Assembly (NCBI GenBank): GCA_013416795.1
Contig: RQSC01000015.1
Location: forward strand, 167,696 to 231,695
DNA: 64,000 nt
From: Prasinococcaceae sp. CCMP 1430
Taxonomy: Eukaryota > Plantae > Prasinodermophyta
Direction of reading: 5' to 3'
Under the pieces are notes generated by a model. It saw only the letters and a program-made list of their open reading frames with translations, was not told where the DNA came from and did no database searches. Numbering within the stretch: the first letter of the stretch is position 1; each line of letters begins with the position of its first letter. Shown here piece by piece: positions 400-27,200 of this stretch. A program made the translations under genes and the position numbers.

Positions 400-946
400 T
401 CAGGACATGGCCTGGGGCGCCGGCGCCTTCGCCAGGTCGACGGCGCGGCCCGCAGTGTGGTCGATGGCGCCCGAACACGCCGAGCGCGCCACACAGCCGG
501 GAACGCAGTAGTACATCGGCAGGCACTCACCGTCCGCCTTACTGCCGTCCACCTCAACAGTCATGGTAAATGGCACACCGACCTGCGTTCCAAGGGAGCG
601 CCAGCCGCCGACGTCAGCACACAGAGGGGGGGAGGTGGCGCCGCGAGGCACTGCGCAGTGCGGGGCGGCCAACCTTGTGCTCGATCGCCACCTCGCCGAG
701 CTTTCCGGTGACCGCATCGGCCACAGCAAAGCGGTTGCCCATGACTGCGCGGTTACGCGCACACGCGCGCAGCGCAGCACAAGAACAGACGTCGGTCAGC
801 CGTCGCACGGCGGGCGTCGCGCGCGAGGCGCACCACCGCTGCGCATGGCGGCGCGAGCGGACCCCGCGCCGGCTCGCTCGCACGCACGCACCCCATCCCG
901 CCAGAGGTCAGGAGTGAATGATGACCTTCGTTGGCTTCGTCGGCAT
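400..946 (-). CDS. Small Rdx/thioredoxin-like protein with in-frame TGA (candidate selenoprotein); exons 946-892, 744-674, 582-400
   Basis: Two canonical introns: 891-745 (GTGCGT..CTGAC..CGCAG, phase 1) and 673-583 (GTTGGC..CTGAC..CGCAG, phase 0). They join to MPTKPTKVIIHS[TGA]PLAGWVMGNRFAVADAVTGKLGEVAIEHKVGVPFTMTVEVDGSKADGECLPMYYCVPGCVARSACSGAIDHTAGRAVDLAKAPAPQAMS*. Confidence 0.65.
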
Positions 947-1946
947 TTCTTGCGCGGCGGCGACCCTGCCCATAGGGTCGAGCAAAGACTAGGTCGAGGC
1001 GAGGGGGCTGGGATGCGAGTGGTCGCTCGCTCGCGGAGCTGTGCCGCCCCCGCACCCCGCACCCCGCCCCGCCCCCGCGCGCGAGCGCCGTCCGTTCCCC
1101 TCGCGGCGCCGTCGCGTTTTTTCCCCGCAATAATGAGCGCAGCGAAATGCACGTCCGCGGTTCCGCGAGCACCCGTTTCATTGGCACGCGGCGCGGAGCG
1201 GGTGCGCCGAATTGCAATTGCACCCCCCAACCGACGCCGCGCGCGACCGCCGAAGAAAAATCTGAATCGCTCTCGCGCCGAACTCAAACTGGCCGGGGGG
1301 AACGAACGGTACGCGACCGCAGCCATGATGATCGAAATGCATTCACTCGGCATTGCCATCAAACTCAATGCGTGTTTTGTGGCCTTTTTTGGCTGGCAAT
1401 GTCATGCACGGCGTGCGCCGCGACGCCACACCGTGCGCCGGCGGCGCCTGCGGGCAGCGCGGGGAGGGGAGCGCCGGGGGCGCGCGCGGGGGGATTTGGG
1501 GGGAAGGCAAGGCGAGCTCGCGTAGGCCTGCTGGTCTGGGACCGCCCCATCGGACGGCGCCGCGCCCAGCGCGCCCCGTCCACCCGTGAGCGTTGAAGCG
1601 CGTCTTTTCGCGGGTGTGCGGGAGGCCTTTTCTCTGCGCACGCAGACATCCCGCTCGCCGCGGCGATGTGGCCTGGTGCGGGGGGAGGGCGCGGCGGGGG
1701 GCCATGGCAATCTCCCCAGGATAGTAGGGACGGGGCACTTCCCTCGTCACTGACGCCCGCGGCGAGGCGCGACGGCGACGCGCTGTGGTCCCAGCACGGA
1801 GGTGGGCCAGCGTCGGCAGGTGCGCAGTTGGCGCTGGGCTGGGCAGCGGCTGGGGAGCCTGGGGGGAGCCACAAACGCCGTCCCTGCCTGTGCTCGGCGT
1901 CGCTACGGGAGTCGGCTCCTCGACGACAGCAGATTCGGCACCTACC

Positions 1947-4900
1947 ATGCGCTTGTTGCCGGTGCCCTGCAACCAGCCGTTGCCGGCGCGTGCGCCGGCA
2001 CTGCCTACGGCGGCCCCTCCGCAATGGTCCCGCTTCGCAAACGCGTTTCCTCCCAGCCCCAGAGGAGAGGGCGCCGGCATTCGTGACATGTATCGCAAGG
2101 ACCCGGGTGAGACGCGGCGACAGCTCGCCTTGGACCTGCTAGGAAGCCAGGAAGATGAGGAGAATTGGGCAAGCCCTTCGCTGCTCCCTGACGCGGCTGG
2201 GGCAAGCTCTGAGAACCCGGGCGGCAGGGTCGCCGCCACACCGGCTCTTCCGCCATCAGAGGAGCGTGTCGACCCCGAGGCCGCATGCCTGCATGCCTCG
2301 AAGACAGCGCACCTTGTTGATGCCCCGGCCTGTGACGGAGAAGAGGCGAATCGTGCGAGGAAGAGGCAGAGACTAAGCGAGATACTGCTCGGAACGACTG
2401 ATGGCGCGCGCGCGGGCGGCTGCACGCGCGAGCCACTCGGGCAGCTGCGCGAGAGGAAGTGCAAAGGAAGGGAGTTCCTCACCACTGACCGGCGCGATGC
2501 GCAGGCTCGCCCGCGGGGCACACCAGGCTACGATGGGCGCACTCTCCTCGTTCCGCAGCAGTACATGAGCGAGCTCACCCCAACCATGCAGCAATTTTGG
2601 CGTGTGAAGAGCTCGCACGCCGACTGCGTCGTGTTTTTCAAGCTCGGCAAATTCTACGAACTCTTCGACGAGGATTCGGACGTCGGTGCGCGCGTCTGCG
2701 GGCTCAAGCAACGCGAGGGGAAAAAATCTGGCTTCCCCGAGCGCTCCTTCGCTCAGTACGGCGTGCGCTTGGTTGCCGAGGGCTATCGTGTGGCGGTCGT
2801 CGAGCAGGTGCGGACGGCGAATGCCTCAGCCAAGGCCGCCATGGAGCGCAGGGTCGTGGCCATTTTGAGTCCGGGGACTCTGCTAGAGCCCGAGCTGCAA
2901 CAGCTCGCCGAGCCGGGCGCGCCATCGACCATTCTGGCAGTTGGCACGAGCGGTGATCACGACGCCTTCGTCGTGGCCGACTGCTATTCAGGGACACTAC
3001 AGGTGCATGTCACTGCTGCGGCAGGAAGCTTCCAAGAGTGGCGCCACGCGCTGGAATCGATCGTGTCACTCGCGGCTCCTGCTGAGGTCCTGCTCCCGGC
3101 AGGCCTGAGCCCACTGCACCGCCGCGCGGTCGAGGCCGCCTGCCGCAGGTCCGCACCCTCCCGGACTGGCACTCTGCTTGTCACCGAGATTGCTGAAGAG
3201 GGCTGGGATGATGCAGGAGGCGCAGCTGCTGTGGCGATCCACGCAGGGCGCTGCTACTGGGAGCAGACTAGCCCGTCAACCGTACAGCAGCTCACTGACC
3301 TTTGCTCAACTGGCAAGCCGAATGAGCCCGTCGCCACTGCGACAGCATTCGCGCTTCTCGTCACTTACCTGCGCGAGGCAAAACTGGACGAGTTGGTGCT
3401 ACCCCGCACGAGAGTCCTCTTCACCCACGCATCGACTGCAGCGACGTTGCGCGAGGGCCTACGCGGCGCGCGCACGGCGATGGGCCAAGATAGTGCAGGA
3501 CTGGATTTCGAGCAGCGCGCGGCCCTCCGGGTGCCGCACCACCTGGCAATCGACCCGGCAGCTGTTGCCAACCTGGAACTTGTCACGAACGTTGACGGTG
3601 GGCATGCTGGCACCCTCCTGGCGGTGCTGTGCAAGTGCAGGTCGCCGGCAGGGAGGCGAATGCTGCGCTCGTGGATGCTGCGACCACTTGCATTTGTCGC
3701 TGTCATCAACAGCCGACAGCAGGCCACTCGACTTCTCCTCGAAGACGATGCCATCTTCGACGCGTGTACGGCTGCGCAGCAAGCACTTGGCAAGATTCCT
3801 GACCTCGCCAGGGCCACCGCAGCTGTCCAGAGGCACGCGCCCGTAACCACGGACGGGGGAGCGGCCTCAGGCAACCGCAGGCACGCAGCAGGGGTTGTGT
3901 TGTACGACTCACTAGATGCGGCATCACAGAGCACACGGGCGCTCGCAGATGCAATGGCTGCCGTTCGTGGAATCCTCGATGCATGCGCTTCCCTGGACCA
4001 CGTGAGGCCCCTTCTCGCCTCCTCTGCGCCGCTGCTGGACCTGCTCAGCCGTCAAGGCTCGCCGCTTTTCCCATCCATCGAGCAGGCGCTCACGGAACTC
4101 GAGGACTTTTTGGGAACTGACGACAGCGGACAGCCATGCGTGCGAGAAGGAGCGGACGCCGCGCTGGAGACTGCGCTCGCCGCGACTGATGCAGCAGAGA
4201 ACGCGCTCGCACAGTTCCTGGAGGTTGCGAAAGGCGACGTCGCTGCTCTCAATGTGACGTCTCCGTCCAAGAACAAGCCGGTCACCTACTCGGGCTCGTA
4301 TGCCCTTGTCGTGTCTAAAAGCGCCGTCGTACCCTCCTGGTGGCAGCCAGCGTCAGAATACGTCGTCTCGAGCAAGAGCAAGACGCGCAACTACACGTGC
4401 GTAGATCTACAGATGCTGCTCAAGCGCGCAGCCGACGCCGAAGAAAAGCGTCGTGTTGCGCTCGAACAGGCCCTTGGCTCGGCGGTGCTCTCGTTTTGCG
4501 CCTCGGCGGACGCGTGGGCTGCCGTCGCACAAGCAGCAGCCGAGCTGGACGCGCTCGTAGCCCTTGGCTGCTCTGCCAGGGCGATGGAGAGCGATGGTCC
4601 TGTCTGCTTTCCGACGGTGTCGCAGCCAAATGGAGCCGGTCCACCCACCTTTGAGGCAAGGGATCTCAGGCATCCAACGCTGCAGCGCTGCGCGTCCGCC
4701 TTGGCAGGCGGTGGTGCAGAGCGTGCGGTGGTTCCAAGTGACATCCACCTTGGAAGCGCGGGCAGCAAGCGCCTCCTGATTTTGTCAGGACCGAACATGG
4801 GAGGAAAGTCCACTCTGATGCGCGCCGTCGCACTGGTGTACGTGCTTGCGCAGATGGGGGCAGCCGTGCCAGCAACATCATGCAGACTGCGGGCCGCGAC

Positions 4901-5798
4901 TCGCCTTTTCGTGCGTATGGGCGCCCAGGATTCAATCACAGAGGGCGAGGTGAGCCGTGAGTGTCTGCCCCCCCCCCACCACACCACACCACACACACGA
5001 CACGCACACACCGCACTCCGCTTCACGATAGCAAACAGCGCTGGCGGATGCGCACTGAAACGTCTAGGTGTGCCCCAGCGTCTGGCTATTGCGCGTGGCG
5101 CAATGTAGCTGATTGTCGCACGCTCCCAACGTCTGCCGCGCCCTTGCTCTGGCGCCGGCCATGCGCGCCTTCGCCGTGCGGCGGCACTAAAGTCGACATT
5201 CATGACTGAGGCGCTCGAAGTTGCAGCTTCAATATCGACCGCCAACGCGTCGGACGTGATAATTCTGGACGAAGTCGGCCGCGGCACATCCACTCGTGAT
5301 GGCGCGGCACTGGCTGCGGCCGTTGCGTGCAAGCTTGGGAAAGCGGGCTGCATCGCAATCCTCAGCACGCACTACACCGAGGTTGCATCACCTGACGGAC
5401 TTCTTGCCGCCGGCATCTCCGAGCACGCTCAGTACGGCTGCATGGGGTACCGCTCTATCGCAGGCGATGATGAAGCACCCGAAAGCATCGAATTTACGTA
5501 TCGCCTGACCCCCGGACCGGCCTCGAAAAGCATGGGCATCGCCGTGGCGGGGTTGGCTGGTGTGCCACCCCCTGTCTTGAGCCTCGCTACAAAGATCGCG
5601 CAGGAAAAATCTTCGAATTTCGCCGCCTCAAGGGCAACACAGTCTAGCAGCGGCCTCATCAAGATTGTCCAACGCGTGCTGCGCGCTGCAGCGGCCGGGG
5701 ACGGCTGCGTCCTGCGGGCCCTTTGGCATACGGCGCATGAGCAGCCTCGCGTCGCGTACCAGGAAAGGCCCCAGCGAGCCGCCAACTGCCACGCTTGA
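1947..5798 (+). CDS. MSH6: MutS homolog, MSH6/MSH7 subfamily; intron 4950-5192; true start may lie upstream (~1666)
   Basis: FFKLGKFYELF mismatch-binding motif, GPNMGGKSTLMR Walker A, RMGAQDSITEGE|STFMTE joined across a GTGAGC..AAAG intron, DEVGRGTST and STHY motifs. Confidence 0.9.
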
Positions 5799-24200: not shown

Positions 24201-27200
24201 CGGCGCTTGTCCATCTTGGCATCGAGGATGTCCTGCGTCTGGTTCGCCGACGTGCGCGCCGAGAAGGTCATGAAGATGGGCAGGTACGACTGGTCGAGCG
24301 AGGAAAGCTTGTTCTGCAGGTTGAGGGTCTTGCCCGTGCCCGTCTCGCCCACCGCCAGCAGGTGATTGCCCGCCTTCAGCAGAGCGTCGGTCAGGTACAT
24401 GTAGCGCACAGTGTCCGAGGTGGGCACGATGATCTGCGCGAATGGCGTGGCCGGGTCGAGCTGGAAGTCGGGCACGGTGGCCATCCAGTCGACCCATTGG
24501 CCGGCCTCCTGATCGTAGCCCCACGAATACACGGGCGCGTCGGCGGGCGGGGCGGTAGACAGCCCGGCGGCAGCGCACGCCTCGCGGAAGGCCTGGTCGA
24601 ACATCGGTTGGCTCGGACCGTTGCAGGTGGCGCCCACCGACCACACCACTGAGAAGAGGAAGAGCGGCTCCACCACGGCGGCCAGCCGGTCGACCTCGGC
24701 GGCCGAGAGCTCGTCCTGCCCCTCCACGCGCACGTAGGGCGCCACCAGGGCGTCCATCACGCGGAAGAGCGAGCACACCAGGTTGCCGTCGCCCGGCGTC
24801 GCGACGGTCTCCTTCAGCGACCTGCGCACTGTCGCGAGCAGTTGTGGCACCAGCGCGTCGAAGAGCGCTCGCAGCTTGTCGGCGTGCTCCTTGATGGCCG
24901 GCGCCAGCGCGTGGAGCCACGAGTCGACCAGCGGGCCGATGCCCAGCGAGATGGGCTCCATGTAAACCATGCCGCAGCGGGAGACTGTCGCGGGCGACGC
25001 GACCGCTAAGTCCTCGACCTCGAACATCATGGTCATCGGCGGCGACAGCTGGATGATCTCGCCCGAGACGAGGCAGAGCTTCTTATTGTCGTCGAGCACG
25101 GTGTTCATATTCTCGATCCAGATGGCGTCCACCGGGCCATCGAATACCATCCACTTCTTGTCAGGCTTGGGGTCGTCGGCGCACTCGCGCATGTAGCACG
25201 CGAGCACGCCGTCCGTCCACTCGTGCGTGGCGTCATCGAATTGGCCGTAGAGCTGACCCATGGTGATCGCCTTGGGGTTGAGCACGACTGTGCGCACCTT
25301 CTCGAAGTCCTCGCTGCCGGCGGCCTTGAGAGCGGTCATGGCCATTTTCAGCACGCTGTAATTTGACGTCTTGCCGCCGCCGGTGGGCCCGACGAGCATC
25401 AGGCCGTGGCGCACAATGGTCGTCTCGTACAGCTGAATGATCTTGCCCACGAATTCCTCGGTCGGCTGCAGGTTGAGTGAGGCGCACGCGTCGTCGATGG
25501 CGCCCAGCAGGTCGGCGTACTCCACCTTGGGAGGCTCTACGCCCGGGAAGAGGTCCGAGATGATGCCCGCGAAAAGCGGCAAGTCGTGGGACAGAAACTT
25601 GGGCACGTTGACGTCGCGAAGCCCGCGCAGCAGCAGGACCTCCTCGTTCTCATCGGGGAAGTCGCGCTTGAGGTTGCCCGCGGCGGTGATCACGCTCTTG
25701 ACGGCGCGCATGCCGTAGTCGTAGTGGTCCTGGCTCGACAGCTGCTCGGAGCAAAGCTTGAAGGTGGCGACCATTTTGCGCGCGAGCGCCTTGGCCTCGC
25801 GGAATCCGAAGGAGTACATCGAGATCTCGCCGATGAGCGCGTAGTCGGGAACCATCATGGCCACAGGCCGGAAGAGCGCCTTGAGGTTGTCGGGCAGCTC
25901 CGAGCGCCCCGCGTAGCCCGGGTTCATCGTGACGTACACAGTCATTTTGCACGGGTCGAGCTTGAGGGAGATCTCGGCGTCCTCGAACCAGAAGCGGGTC
26001 ATCCTGTTCTGGATGGCCAGCTGGATGGTCAGGATCTGCTGCGCCACCACACTGAGGACCTCCAAGTCGATGCGGTTGAACTCGTCGAAGCACGCCCACG
26101 CACCAGACGACGCCAGCCCCTTGAAGAACTTGCCCATCGCCAAGTAGTCGAGGCCGTCCGAACAGTTGAAGACCACGCACTGCATGGCAAGCGCCTTGGC
26201 GAGGTCCTTCACTGACTCTGTCTTGCCCGTACCGGCGGGCCCTGCCGGCGCGCCGCCCAGGTTGAGGTCCATGGCGCCCATGAGCGTCATGTAGCAGCGG
26301 TCGGTGAGCGGCGTGATCACCAGGCGTGCGCTGTTGCCCAGGTACTCGTACCCGTACGCGAGGTTGGCGCTCACCATCTTGACGCGCATGTTGTCGTCCT
26401 CCCAGTAGTAGCGCAGCTGCGAGACCCACTCGAACGCGCTCGCGTTCGTCACCTTGTCCTTCAGCAGGCCGGCGGTCACGTCGCGGGCGTGCACGTCGAC
26501 CACAATGAGCGCTCCCAGCGTCTTGCGCTCGAGCCCGGTGAGCTTGCCGCGCACGAGGTCGGTGAGCCCGAGCAGCTGGCCGTTGAGCTTTCCCATGTAC
26601 TCTTCCATGGAATTCCCCTCGAAGGCCGCCTCGACCTCCTGCGTCCAATACGTCGAGCTCACGGCCAGCACGGTCATGCCCGGCCAGAGCTTGACCCACT
26701 CGTTCCGGTCTCGGCACATGTAGTCCTCCAGGCTCTGCTTGATTGAGCCGTGGATTGCGCCGCGCATGCACGACTCGACCTCGCACAGCCAGTTCTCCAC
26801 TGCGCCGCGGGGGTACATGGACTGGTCGAATTTGACTTCCTCCTTCTCGGCGGAGATCATGTGCGTGATCTCCAGGTCGTCCTGAAACTTGATGGACGCG
26901 ATGGCCTCGAAGCACTTCTTGAGGTGCGGCTGGACGGCCAGCGGGTTCTTGGTCTGGGAGAGGATCTGCAACAGCTCGTCGTTCGAGAGGAAGTAGAAAC
27001 GTGAAAAGATCTCGCGCTTGCTCTCGAGGTACTCCGACAGCGACTTCTGCACGCTCTCGAGCATCTTGTTTCCCTCCATGAAGTTGTCGAGCATCTTCTT
27101 GGACGAGCACGCCACGAGCACGCCCGGCGATTTCACGGCGGCGGCCATCGCCTTGCGCCACATGCGGTCGACATTGGAGAAGCGCTTACCTTCGAGCGGC

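Follow-up and report, generated by a model that had tools for sequence, protein, structure and literature searches.

The minus strand of the window, by which we mean the whole 64,000-nucleotide stretch of Prasinococcaceae sp. CCMP 1430 DNA analysed here, very probably carries between positions 946 and 271 a genuine three-exon selenoprotein gene, whose product of about 102 amino acids is inferred to contain selenocysteine (Sec). Support for this reading comes from the anatomy of the gene, a Sec/Cys pair among its relatives, conservation on both sides of an in-frame TGA, the agreement of its exon junctions with intronless genes, a hairpin that recurs in the 3' untranslated region (UTR), and the resemblance of one relative's modelled fold to that of known selenoproteins. 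Below, we lay out this evidence and weigh it against three other explanations of the same locus.

Results

A probable spliced gene interrupted by an in-frame TGA

An earlier note on this DNA had proposed an ATG at 946, a TGA at codon 13, a GTGCGT donor and three exons that together encode 102 amino acids, and all of these, including the exon coordinates, were borne out on the minus strand (Table 1). The spliced model comprises 102 codons in three exons. Exon 1 encodes the beta-strand-like segment KVIIHS before the TGA and reads CCT CTG GCG GGA TGG G between the TGA and the donor; in terms of the family, exon 2 covers helix alpha-1 and strand beta-2, and exon 3 supplies the nearly invariant E-C-L-P-x-Y-Y (with the codon for Cys62 at 525-523) together with a stretch rich in Cys, a helical tail and the stop codon. 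As the note had also stated, the gene escapes ORF finders, being absent from every mechanical ORF list. Its argument from intron phase holds only in part: the junction that joins G to TC in a Val codon does place exon 1 in frame with exons 2 and 3, but that the fit is exact is weak evidence when taken alone, because intron 1 amounts to 49 codons without an in-frame stop and the frame is therefore kept whether the intron is spliced or not. With a G+C content of 65-70%, long open frames are cheap.

Table 1. Features of the selenoprotein locus in window coordinates
Feature	Positions	Strand	Description
Alternative in-frame ATG	971-973	minus	9 codons upstream of ATG 946
Exon 1	892-946	minus	55 nt; ATG 946-944, KVIIHS, proposed Sec codon TGA, PLAGW, first base of Val codon
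In-frame TGA, proposed Sec codon	908-910	minus	residue 13; aligned with TGA or TGC in relatives
Intron 1	745-891	minus	phase 1, GTGCGT...GCAG, 147 nt
Exon 2	674-744	minus	last two bases of Val codon (tc), then ATG-GGC-AAC; encodes MGNRFAVADAVTGKLGEVAIEHK
Intron 2	583-673	minus	phase 0, GTTGGC...GCAG, 91 nt
Exon 3	400-582	minus	encodes VGVPFTMTVEVDG; stop TGA 402-400
SECIS-like hairpin	271-343	minus	3' UTR fold; same architecture in relatives

Translation from the alternative upstream ATG is possible and less likely than from ATG 946: the former has C at position -3, a weak context, versus A at -3 for the latter. The N-termini that precede the Sec position in relatives are 8-16 residues long.

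Several features of the neighbourhood were recorded separately. A convergent plus-strand neighbour with an HA (helicase-associated) domain ends at 190, and its transcript-like contigs end at 261 (run X2) and 282 (run X1); the 3' end of this neighbour thus reaches the foot of the hairpin at 271, so that the two 3' UTRs abut or overlap. On the other side, a short seawater metatranscriptome contig (X1) can be matched to 1260-1364 if 4 mismatches and a 6-nt insertion are allowed. The match lies within a stretch of about 800 nt without an obvious gene, ahead of a MutS-like gene (1785-5108, plus strand), and could stem from a UTR, from an RNA that is not annotated or from carried-over DNA. Elsewhere in the window, an Rfam match to RMST_9, a region of a vertebrate lncRNA, at 26779-26962 (minus; 47.8 bits, E 1e-4, against a gathering score of 65) is almost certainly due to chance or composition in an alga.

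Relatives carry TGA or a cysteine codon at the same position

Homologues were sought with separate exon pieces, the primary phmmer search using exon 3 alone, and exon 1 was included in no query. A word-indexed protein search with exon 3 recovered only near-identical calls from the same species, from Tara Oceans metagenomes. The exhaustive phmmer search with the same exon retrieved small relatives of 60-99 amino acids (best E 2.4e-10), and a profile search extended the family to about 38 members of roughly 80-100 amino acids, none of which bears a name or a Pfam domain. With the exception of one MMETSP transcript, all members derive from marine metagenomes or Logan assemblies. The PDB held no significant sequence match, and the ESM Atlas gave no usable lead. 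Five large repeat proteins among the phmmer matches (P0006, P0007, P0016, P0017 and P0019) are bacterial MBG_2/HYR_4C adhesins with compositional similarity and were rejected.

Most relatives had been called from a Met equivalent to Met 20 of the window protein (MGN...), which implies that the gene callers had stopped at something upstream. We read the DNA upstream of the called Met in eight independent relatives. Seven of the eight have an in-frame TGA at exactly the window's position (Table 2), and the eighth, P0021, has TGC (Cys) there within an uninterrupted ORF of 99 amino acids. TGC occupies this position in L021/L022 and L034-L039, and the P0021 population is all TGC. In the resulting Sec/Cys pair, TVIVKS-C-PTAGWVMNNR of P0021 matches KVIIHS-U-PLAGWVMGNR of the window. 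The shared motif is a hydrophobic strand followed by [S/T]-U-P-x-A-G-[W/F/Y], and conservation extends to both sides of the TGA; further along the alignment, G53, K54, E58, C59, P61, Y63, T82 and A83 are nearly invariant. The earlier note had predicted a TGA/Cys alignment at position 13 with flanking conservation on both sides, and since exon 1 was absent from the queries, the appearance of the TGA motif upstream of the relatives' called starts is a prediction fulfilled rather than a circular result.

Table 2. Residues around the in-frame TGA in the seven TGA-containing relatives; -TGA- marks the codon itself
Relative	Translated sequence
L023	..-TGA-PLAGFGMGN
L024	..VTVYS-TGA-PWAGYAMGNR
L028	..VTLKT-TGA-PLAGFVEMNN
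L029	..VKLYT-TGA-PTAGWVECGR
L030	..VTLYT-TGA-PLAGWAMGNR
L032	..VVLKS-TGA-PWA[D/G]WANGNR
L040	..VKLYT-TGA-PFAGFVQGNR

These data bear on the possibility that exon 1 is merely 5' UTR with a 12-codon upstream ORF ending at the TGA, and that an N-myristoylated protein of 83 amino acids begins with MGN at ATG 742. Gene callers do start most relatives at that Met, MGNRFA resembles a myristoylation start, the context of ATG 742 is good, there are no RNA or protein data for the locus, and Rfam finds no SECIS element. Against this, eight further genes conserve the protein sequence on either side of the TGA, the Cys form is a single continuous ORF, and SECIS-like hairpins go with all of the TGA forms and with none of the Cys forms (see below). 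Moreover, L029, L040 and L032 have V, V and A, respectively, where the others have Met, with no ATG after the TGA, so that their conserved helix can be produced only by reading through it. Because three relatives have no Met after the TGA, we regard an upstream ORF combined with an MGN start as ruled out, and we retain for it no more than a very small probability. The earlier note had held that its reading would fall if homologues were conserved only from MGNRFA onward; this is not the case, as the strand before the TGA and the PxAG[WFY] segment are both conserved.

The view that the gene encodes a selenoprotein must also be set against decoding of the TGA by a near-cognate tRNA, or a reassigned code (for example, to Trp or Cys), without involvement of selenium. 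No direct evidence for selenium is available and curated models recognise no SECIS element, which leaves room for such a mechanism. TGA, however, serves as the ordinary stop codon of this gene and of L023, which argues that the code is not reassigned; the exchange of Cys for TGA together with a 3' K-turn hairpin is the standard signature of Sec; and many selenoproteins have been reported from the species (PMC7455551). We therefore consider decoding without selenium to be exceedingly improbable, and continue with Sec as the preferred reading of the codon.

A SECIS-like hairpin accompanies the TGA forms

In the 3' UTR of the window gene, a hairpin lies 65 nt past the stop codon. Its helix I pairs 343-340 with 274-271, and its core sets AUGA (335-332) opposite GA (284-283), the latter within a GGAG (285-282) that is common to the 3' side of many relatives' hairpins. 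Helix II consists of 9 bp with a bulged A, is interrupted by a 3-nt loop and is topped by a mini-stem. The element has the core and both helices of a SECIS but no unpaired AA at its apex; the z-score of the fold is only -1.9.

The same architecture, [A/G]UGA-N followed by helix II and N-GA-N together with helix I, was observed 21-102 nt after the stop codon in all eight TGA genes (the window gene and the seven relatives). In five of the six relatives' contigs that were scanned with a descriptor, it was the sole such hairpin on either strand, and the Cys-form loci gave no hit with the same descriptor in their 3' UTRs. Positions 2-3 of helix II vary between genes while their pairing is kept (G-C/C-G and C-G/U-A/U-G). 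The descriptor scan took the place of a covariance model, as MAFFT had put the 3' GA of several relatives' hairpins out of register.

Over both strands of the window (128 kb), only three such hairpins have dG <= -20, the element downstream of our gene among them. That one of them should by chance fall on the correct strand of this 200-nt UTR has a probability far below 1%, with the reservation that the descriptor had been relaxed post hoc so as to accept the window element. The remaining two, at 24362-24429 (plus) and 59298-59244 (minus), also have a UGA...GA core, but lie inside coding sequence and were dismissed as false positives; the former lies opposite a dynein P-loop region.

The Rfam SECIS models gave no match in positions 1-1200, in the whole window or in five relatives' contigs, even at E <= 10. 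We take this to reflect poor sensitivity of the models, which missed the relatives' hairpins as well. Ostreococcus SECIS elements normally have GUGA cores and long mini-stems (PMC2375036), features that also occur in the hairpins of L029, L030 and L040. In two GC-rich relatives, the hairpins (L029:1681-1718 and L040:1791-1828) are plain stems of 11-13 bp that have a GUGA core, are closed by small loops (UUUCCUUG, GUAA) and lack the usual apical AA bulge; if functional, these would be unusually minimal SECIS elements.

The TGA and splice sites are maintained in natural populations

Had the TGA been a base-call error, as the earlier note had allowed, the proposed gene would have collapsed. A DNA contig from run X3, however, spans 622-1446 with zero differences, which excludes this, and the TGA is retained in 12 of 12 metagenome haplotypes that cover codon 13. 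Across the three exons, these haplotypes vary at 6 sites in 309 nt. A single codon of exon 1 is variable among the 12, a dinucleotide change converting Pro2 to Val (P2V) in L016; the sole polymorphism of exon 2 (725) is synonymous; and the variants in exon 3 are one synonymous change, one V-to-M and one terminal S-to-P. Intron 1, at 147 nt, has 12 SNP sites and one 41-nt indel. The latter is a deletion of 889-849 in L016, not a multiple of 3 in length, that leaves the GTGCGT donor intact. The deleted segment falls between two GTGCGTGCG repeats.

Both exon junctions of the window model are indirectly confirmed by the intronless relatives. At intron 1, the relatives show the spacing AGW-V-M(G/N)NR that splicing would produce in the window gene; at intron 2, EHK/VGVPF (the slash marking the junction) matches VVHKVAYP and VKHRVGLL of the relatives; and the pieces encoded by exons 2 and 3 can be aligned with them over their full length. 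This support for splicing comes from comparison of genes alone, without RNA reads: neither of the RNA-type runs (X1 and X2) yielded a contig over the gene, and no splice joint was seen in them. X2, the only probable transcriptome of the species, contains a contig for the convergent neighbour (1-261) and none for this gene.

Within intron 2, X3 has a depth of about 4x over 601-650. Other contigs exit the window at 574 and 669: they match 574-648 and 622-669 and then diverge almost exactly at the ends of the intron. Three Tara contigs, L010 (1-1100), L017 and L018, switch at about 669 into a different gene upstream of exon 3, one with a 386-aa ORF that has a tail-anchor-like end. That gene has an intron of its own that starts with GTGATGC and then continues with the same sequence as intron 2. 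No second copy of intron 2 is present in the 64-kb window. We conclude that intron 2 is probably one copy of a multi-copy, introner-like intron. The switch at about 669 was considered as evidence against the gene and set aside, the intron being multi-copy; although we attribute the junction to the repeated intron, a real rearrangement in some strains could also account for it.

A different concern is that the family is a true selenoprotein family of which the window copy is decaying or poorly decoded, having lost its apical AA, gained two recent introns and become barely expressed. This would agree with the lack of an X2 transcript contig for the gene, versus a depth of 18 for its neighbour, with a hairpin that has no AA and an interrupted helix II, with a 2-nt indel in the hairpin apex in 9-10 haplotypes, and with the missing exons 1 and 2 upstream of exon 3 in L010, L017 and L018. 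Yet the ORF, TGA, splice sites and hairpin core are intact in all covering haplotypes, variation in the exons is low and partly synonymous, and the 41-nt intron deletion spares the donor. Furthermore, the hairpins of L023 and L029 also have no 5' AA, so that its absence seems to be a trait of the family. On these grounds we judge decay of the window copy to be unlikely and favour an intact gene.

A relative's model resembles the SelW/Rdx fold

The fold was modelled not on the window protein but on the natural intronless Cys homologue P0021 (AF2, 23-row alignment; pLDDT 71.7, pTM 0.61). The predicted elements (E4-9, H20-31, E36-41, E46-51, E54-59 and H68-90) are arranged as a strand, the Cys, a short helix, a helix, three strands and helices, a beta-alpha-beta-beta-beta-alpha layout. 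In an exhaustive structural comparison with 48,161 representatives, the SelW-related structure 2fa8 ranked first (Z 7.3), mouse SelW (2npb) fourth (Z 6.4) and MIEN1 (2ljk) seventh (Z 5.8). Foldseek on the same model placed NDUFA2 (8e73_A2) best, at E 2.3e-3, and SelW at probability 1.00 with TM 0.53/0.58 and E of about 2-3e-3. The matches are weak, since no Foldseek E reached 0.001 or below and every Z was less than 8, and they were obtained with a relative. The model and the two fold searches thus lend modest support to the Rdx beta-alpha-beta-beta-beta layout suggested in the earlier note, that is, to a predicted Rdx/NDUFA2-type thioredoxin-like fold with Sec at the CxxU position; membership of the Rdx family is not shown.

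Like the members of the Rdx family (SelW, SelV, SelT, SelH and MIEN1/Rdx12; PF10262), these proteins are small, have a predicted beta1-alpha1-beta2-beta3-beta4-alpha layout, carry Sec just past beta1, in the loop where the first helix starts, and occur mostly in the Sec form. Where Rdx proteins have CxxU or CxxC, however, the new family has a lone Sec in [S/T]-U-P-x-A-G-[W/F/Y], and it differs further in a Cys-rich segment, E-C-x-P-x-Y-Y-x-C-P...C...C, and a conserved C-terminal ...GGAP....MER tail. No member has a Cys at -3 or +3 of Sec, and none of 12 members matches PF10262 at E <= 10, nor does P0021 have a Pfam family. These results uphold the observation that the motif is not CxxU and fits no recognised family.

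Many rows of the fold searches are occupied by NDUFA2 (complex I B8) and mitoribosomal mL43 (PF05047), which share the small thioredoxin-like fold. They show no sequence match to the new family, however, do not share its motifs, and are subunits of large complexes that are not selenoproteins in eukaryotes. As for the active site, Cys62 within E-C-x-P-x-Y-Y is a candidate resolving residue, and its role as selenenylsulfide partner is inferred.

Discussion

The proposed mode of action of this gene can be outlined as follows. The mRNA would carry a UGA at codon 13, which we infer to be recoded to Sec through the SECIS-like K-turn hairpin 65 nt past the stop codon, the hairpin presumably working with the alga's SBP2/eEFSec/tRNA-Sec machinery. 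The resulting protein would belong to an unnamed family of about 85-100 amino acids in marine green picoalgae, in which the first beta strand ends in [S/T]-U-P-x-A-G-[W/F/Y] and is followed by a helix, three strands and further helices. If the layout is indeed thioredoxin-like and of the SelW/Rdx type, Sec would occupy the loop that holds CxxU in Rdx proteins. The likeliest chemistry is then thiol/selenol redox catalysis, an inferred function in which the nearly invariant Cys62 of E-C-x-P may act as the resolving partner.

New eukaryotic selenoprotein families are rare. In the genome paper of this species, members of known families were detected with profiles (PMC7455551, PMC6627142), and a 2020 survey of 137 algae added three families. 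We compared the new family with lineage-restricted algal selenoproteins, namely Ostreococcus MSP and Hypothetical proteins 1-3 (Lobanov 2007) and SymSEP, PDI_e and AhpC_b (Jiang 2020), which, like it, are short and without names, occur nearly always in the Sec form and are confined to marine protists. Hypothetical proteins 1-3 of Ostreococcus, with sequences that terminate in GCUG or CUGR or contain GLUNIAQAG, are unrelated to it (supplement, PMC2375036). No family name in the available text of Jiang 2020 fits, although that text does not cover all 42 names (PMC7539508). In the literature as a whole, of which our coverage is incomplete, we found no description of this family, and the gene is probably the first to be described from an unnamed family whose fold and mechanism class are familiar.

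On balance, though with considerable reserve, we lean toward a broader proposal: that early-diverging marine green picoalgae share an undescribed eukaryotic selenoprotein family with a SelW-like thioredoxin fold, a lone Sec in the [S/T]-U-P-x-A-G-[W/F/Y] loop and a conserved Cys cluster, a SECIS element that often lacks the apical AA, and almost only the Sec form. If this is true, two decades of selenoproteome surveys of such genomes have missed it. The family is short, split at the UGA in every automatic gene call, and absent from Pfam and the named protein databases, and it thereby exposes a blind spot of profile-based selenoprotein surveys. Its hairpins, which look like working SECIS elements and yet are missed by curated models, offer a set on which SECIS finders could be retrained for use with GC-rich algae. 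For the alga itself, the genome annotation gains one gene and two introns, one of which has apparently spread recently. For biochemistry, the family offers a natural Sec/Cys pair and a second active-site design on a SelW-type fold, and, if the broader proposal is correct, its site of Sec plus a Cys cluster may carry out chemistry other than that of CxxU, such as the handling of metals or chalcogens.
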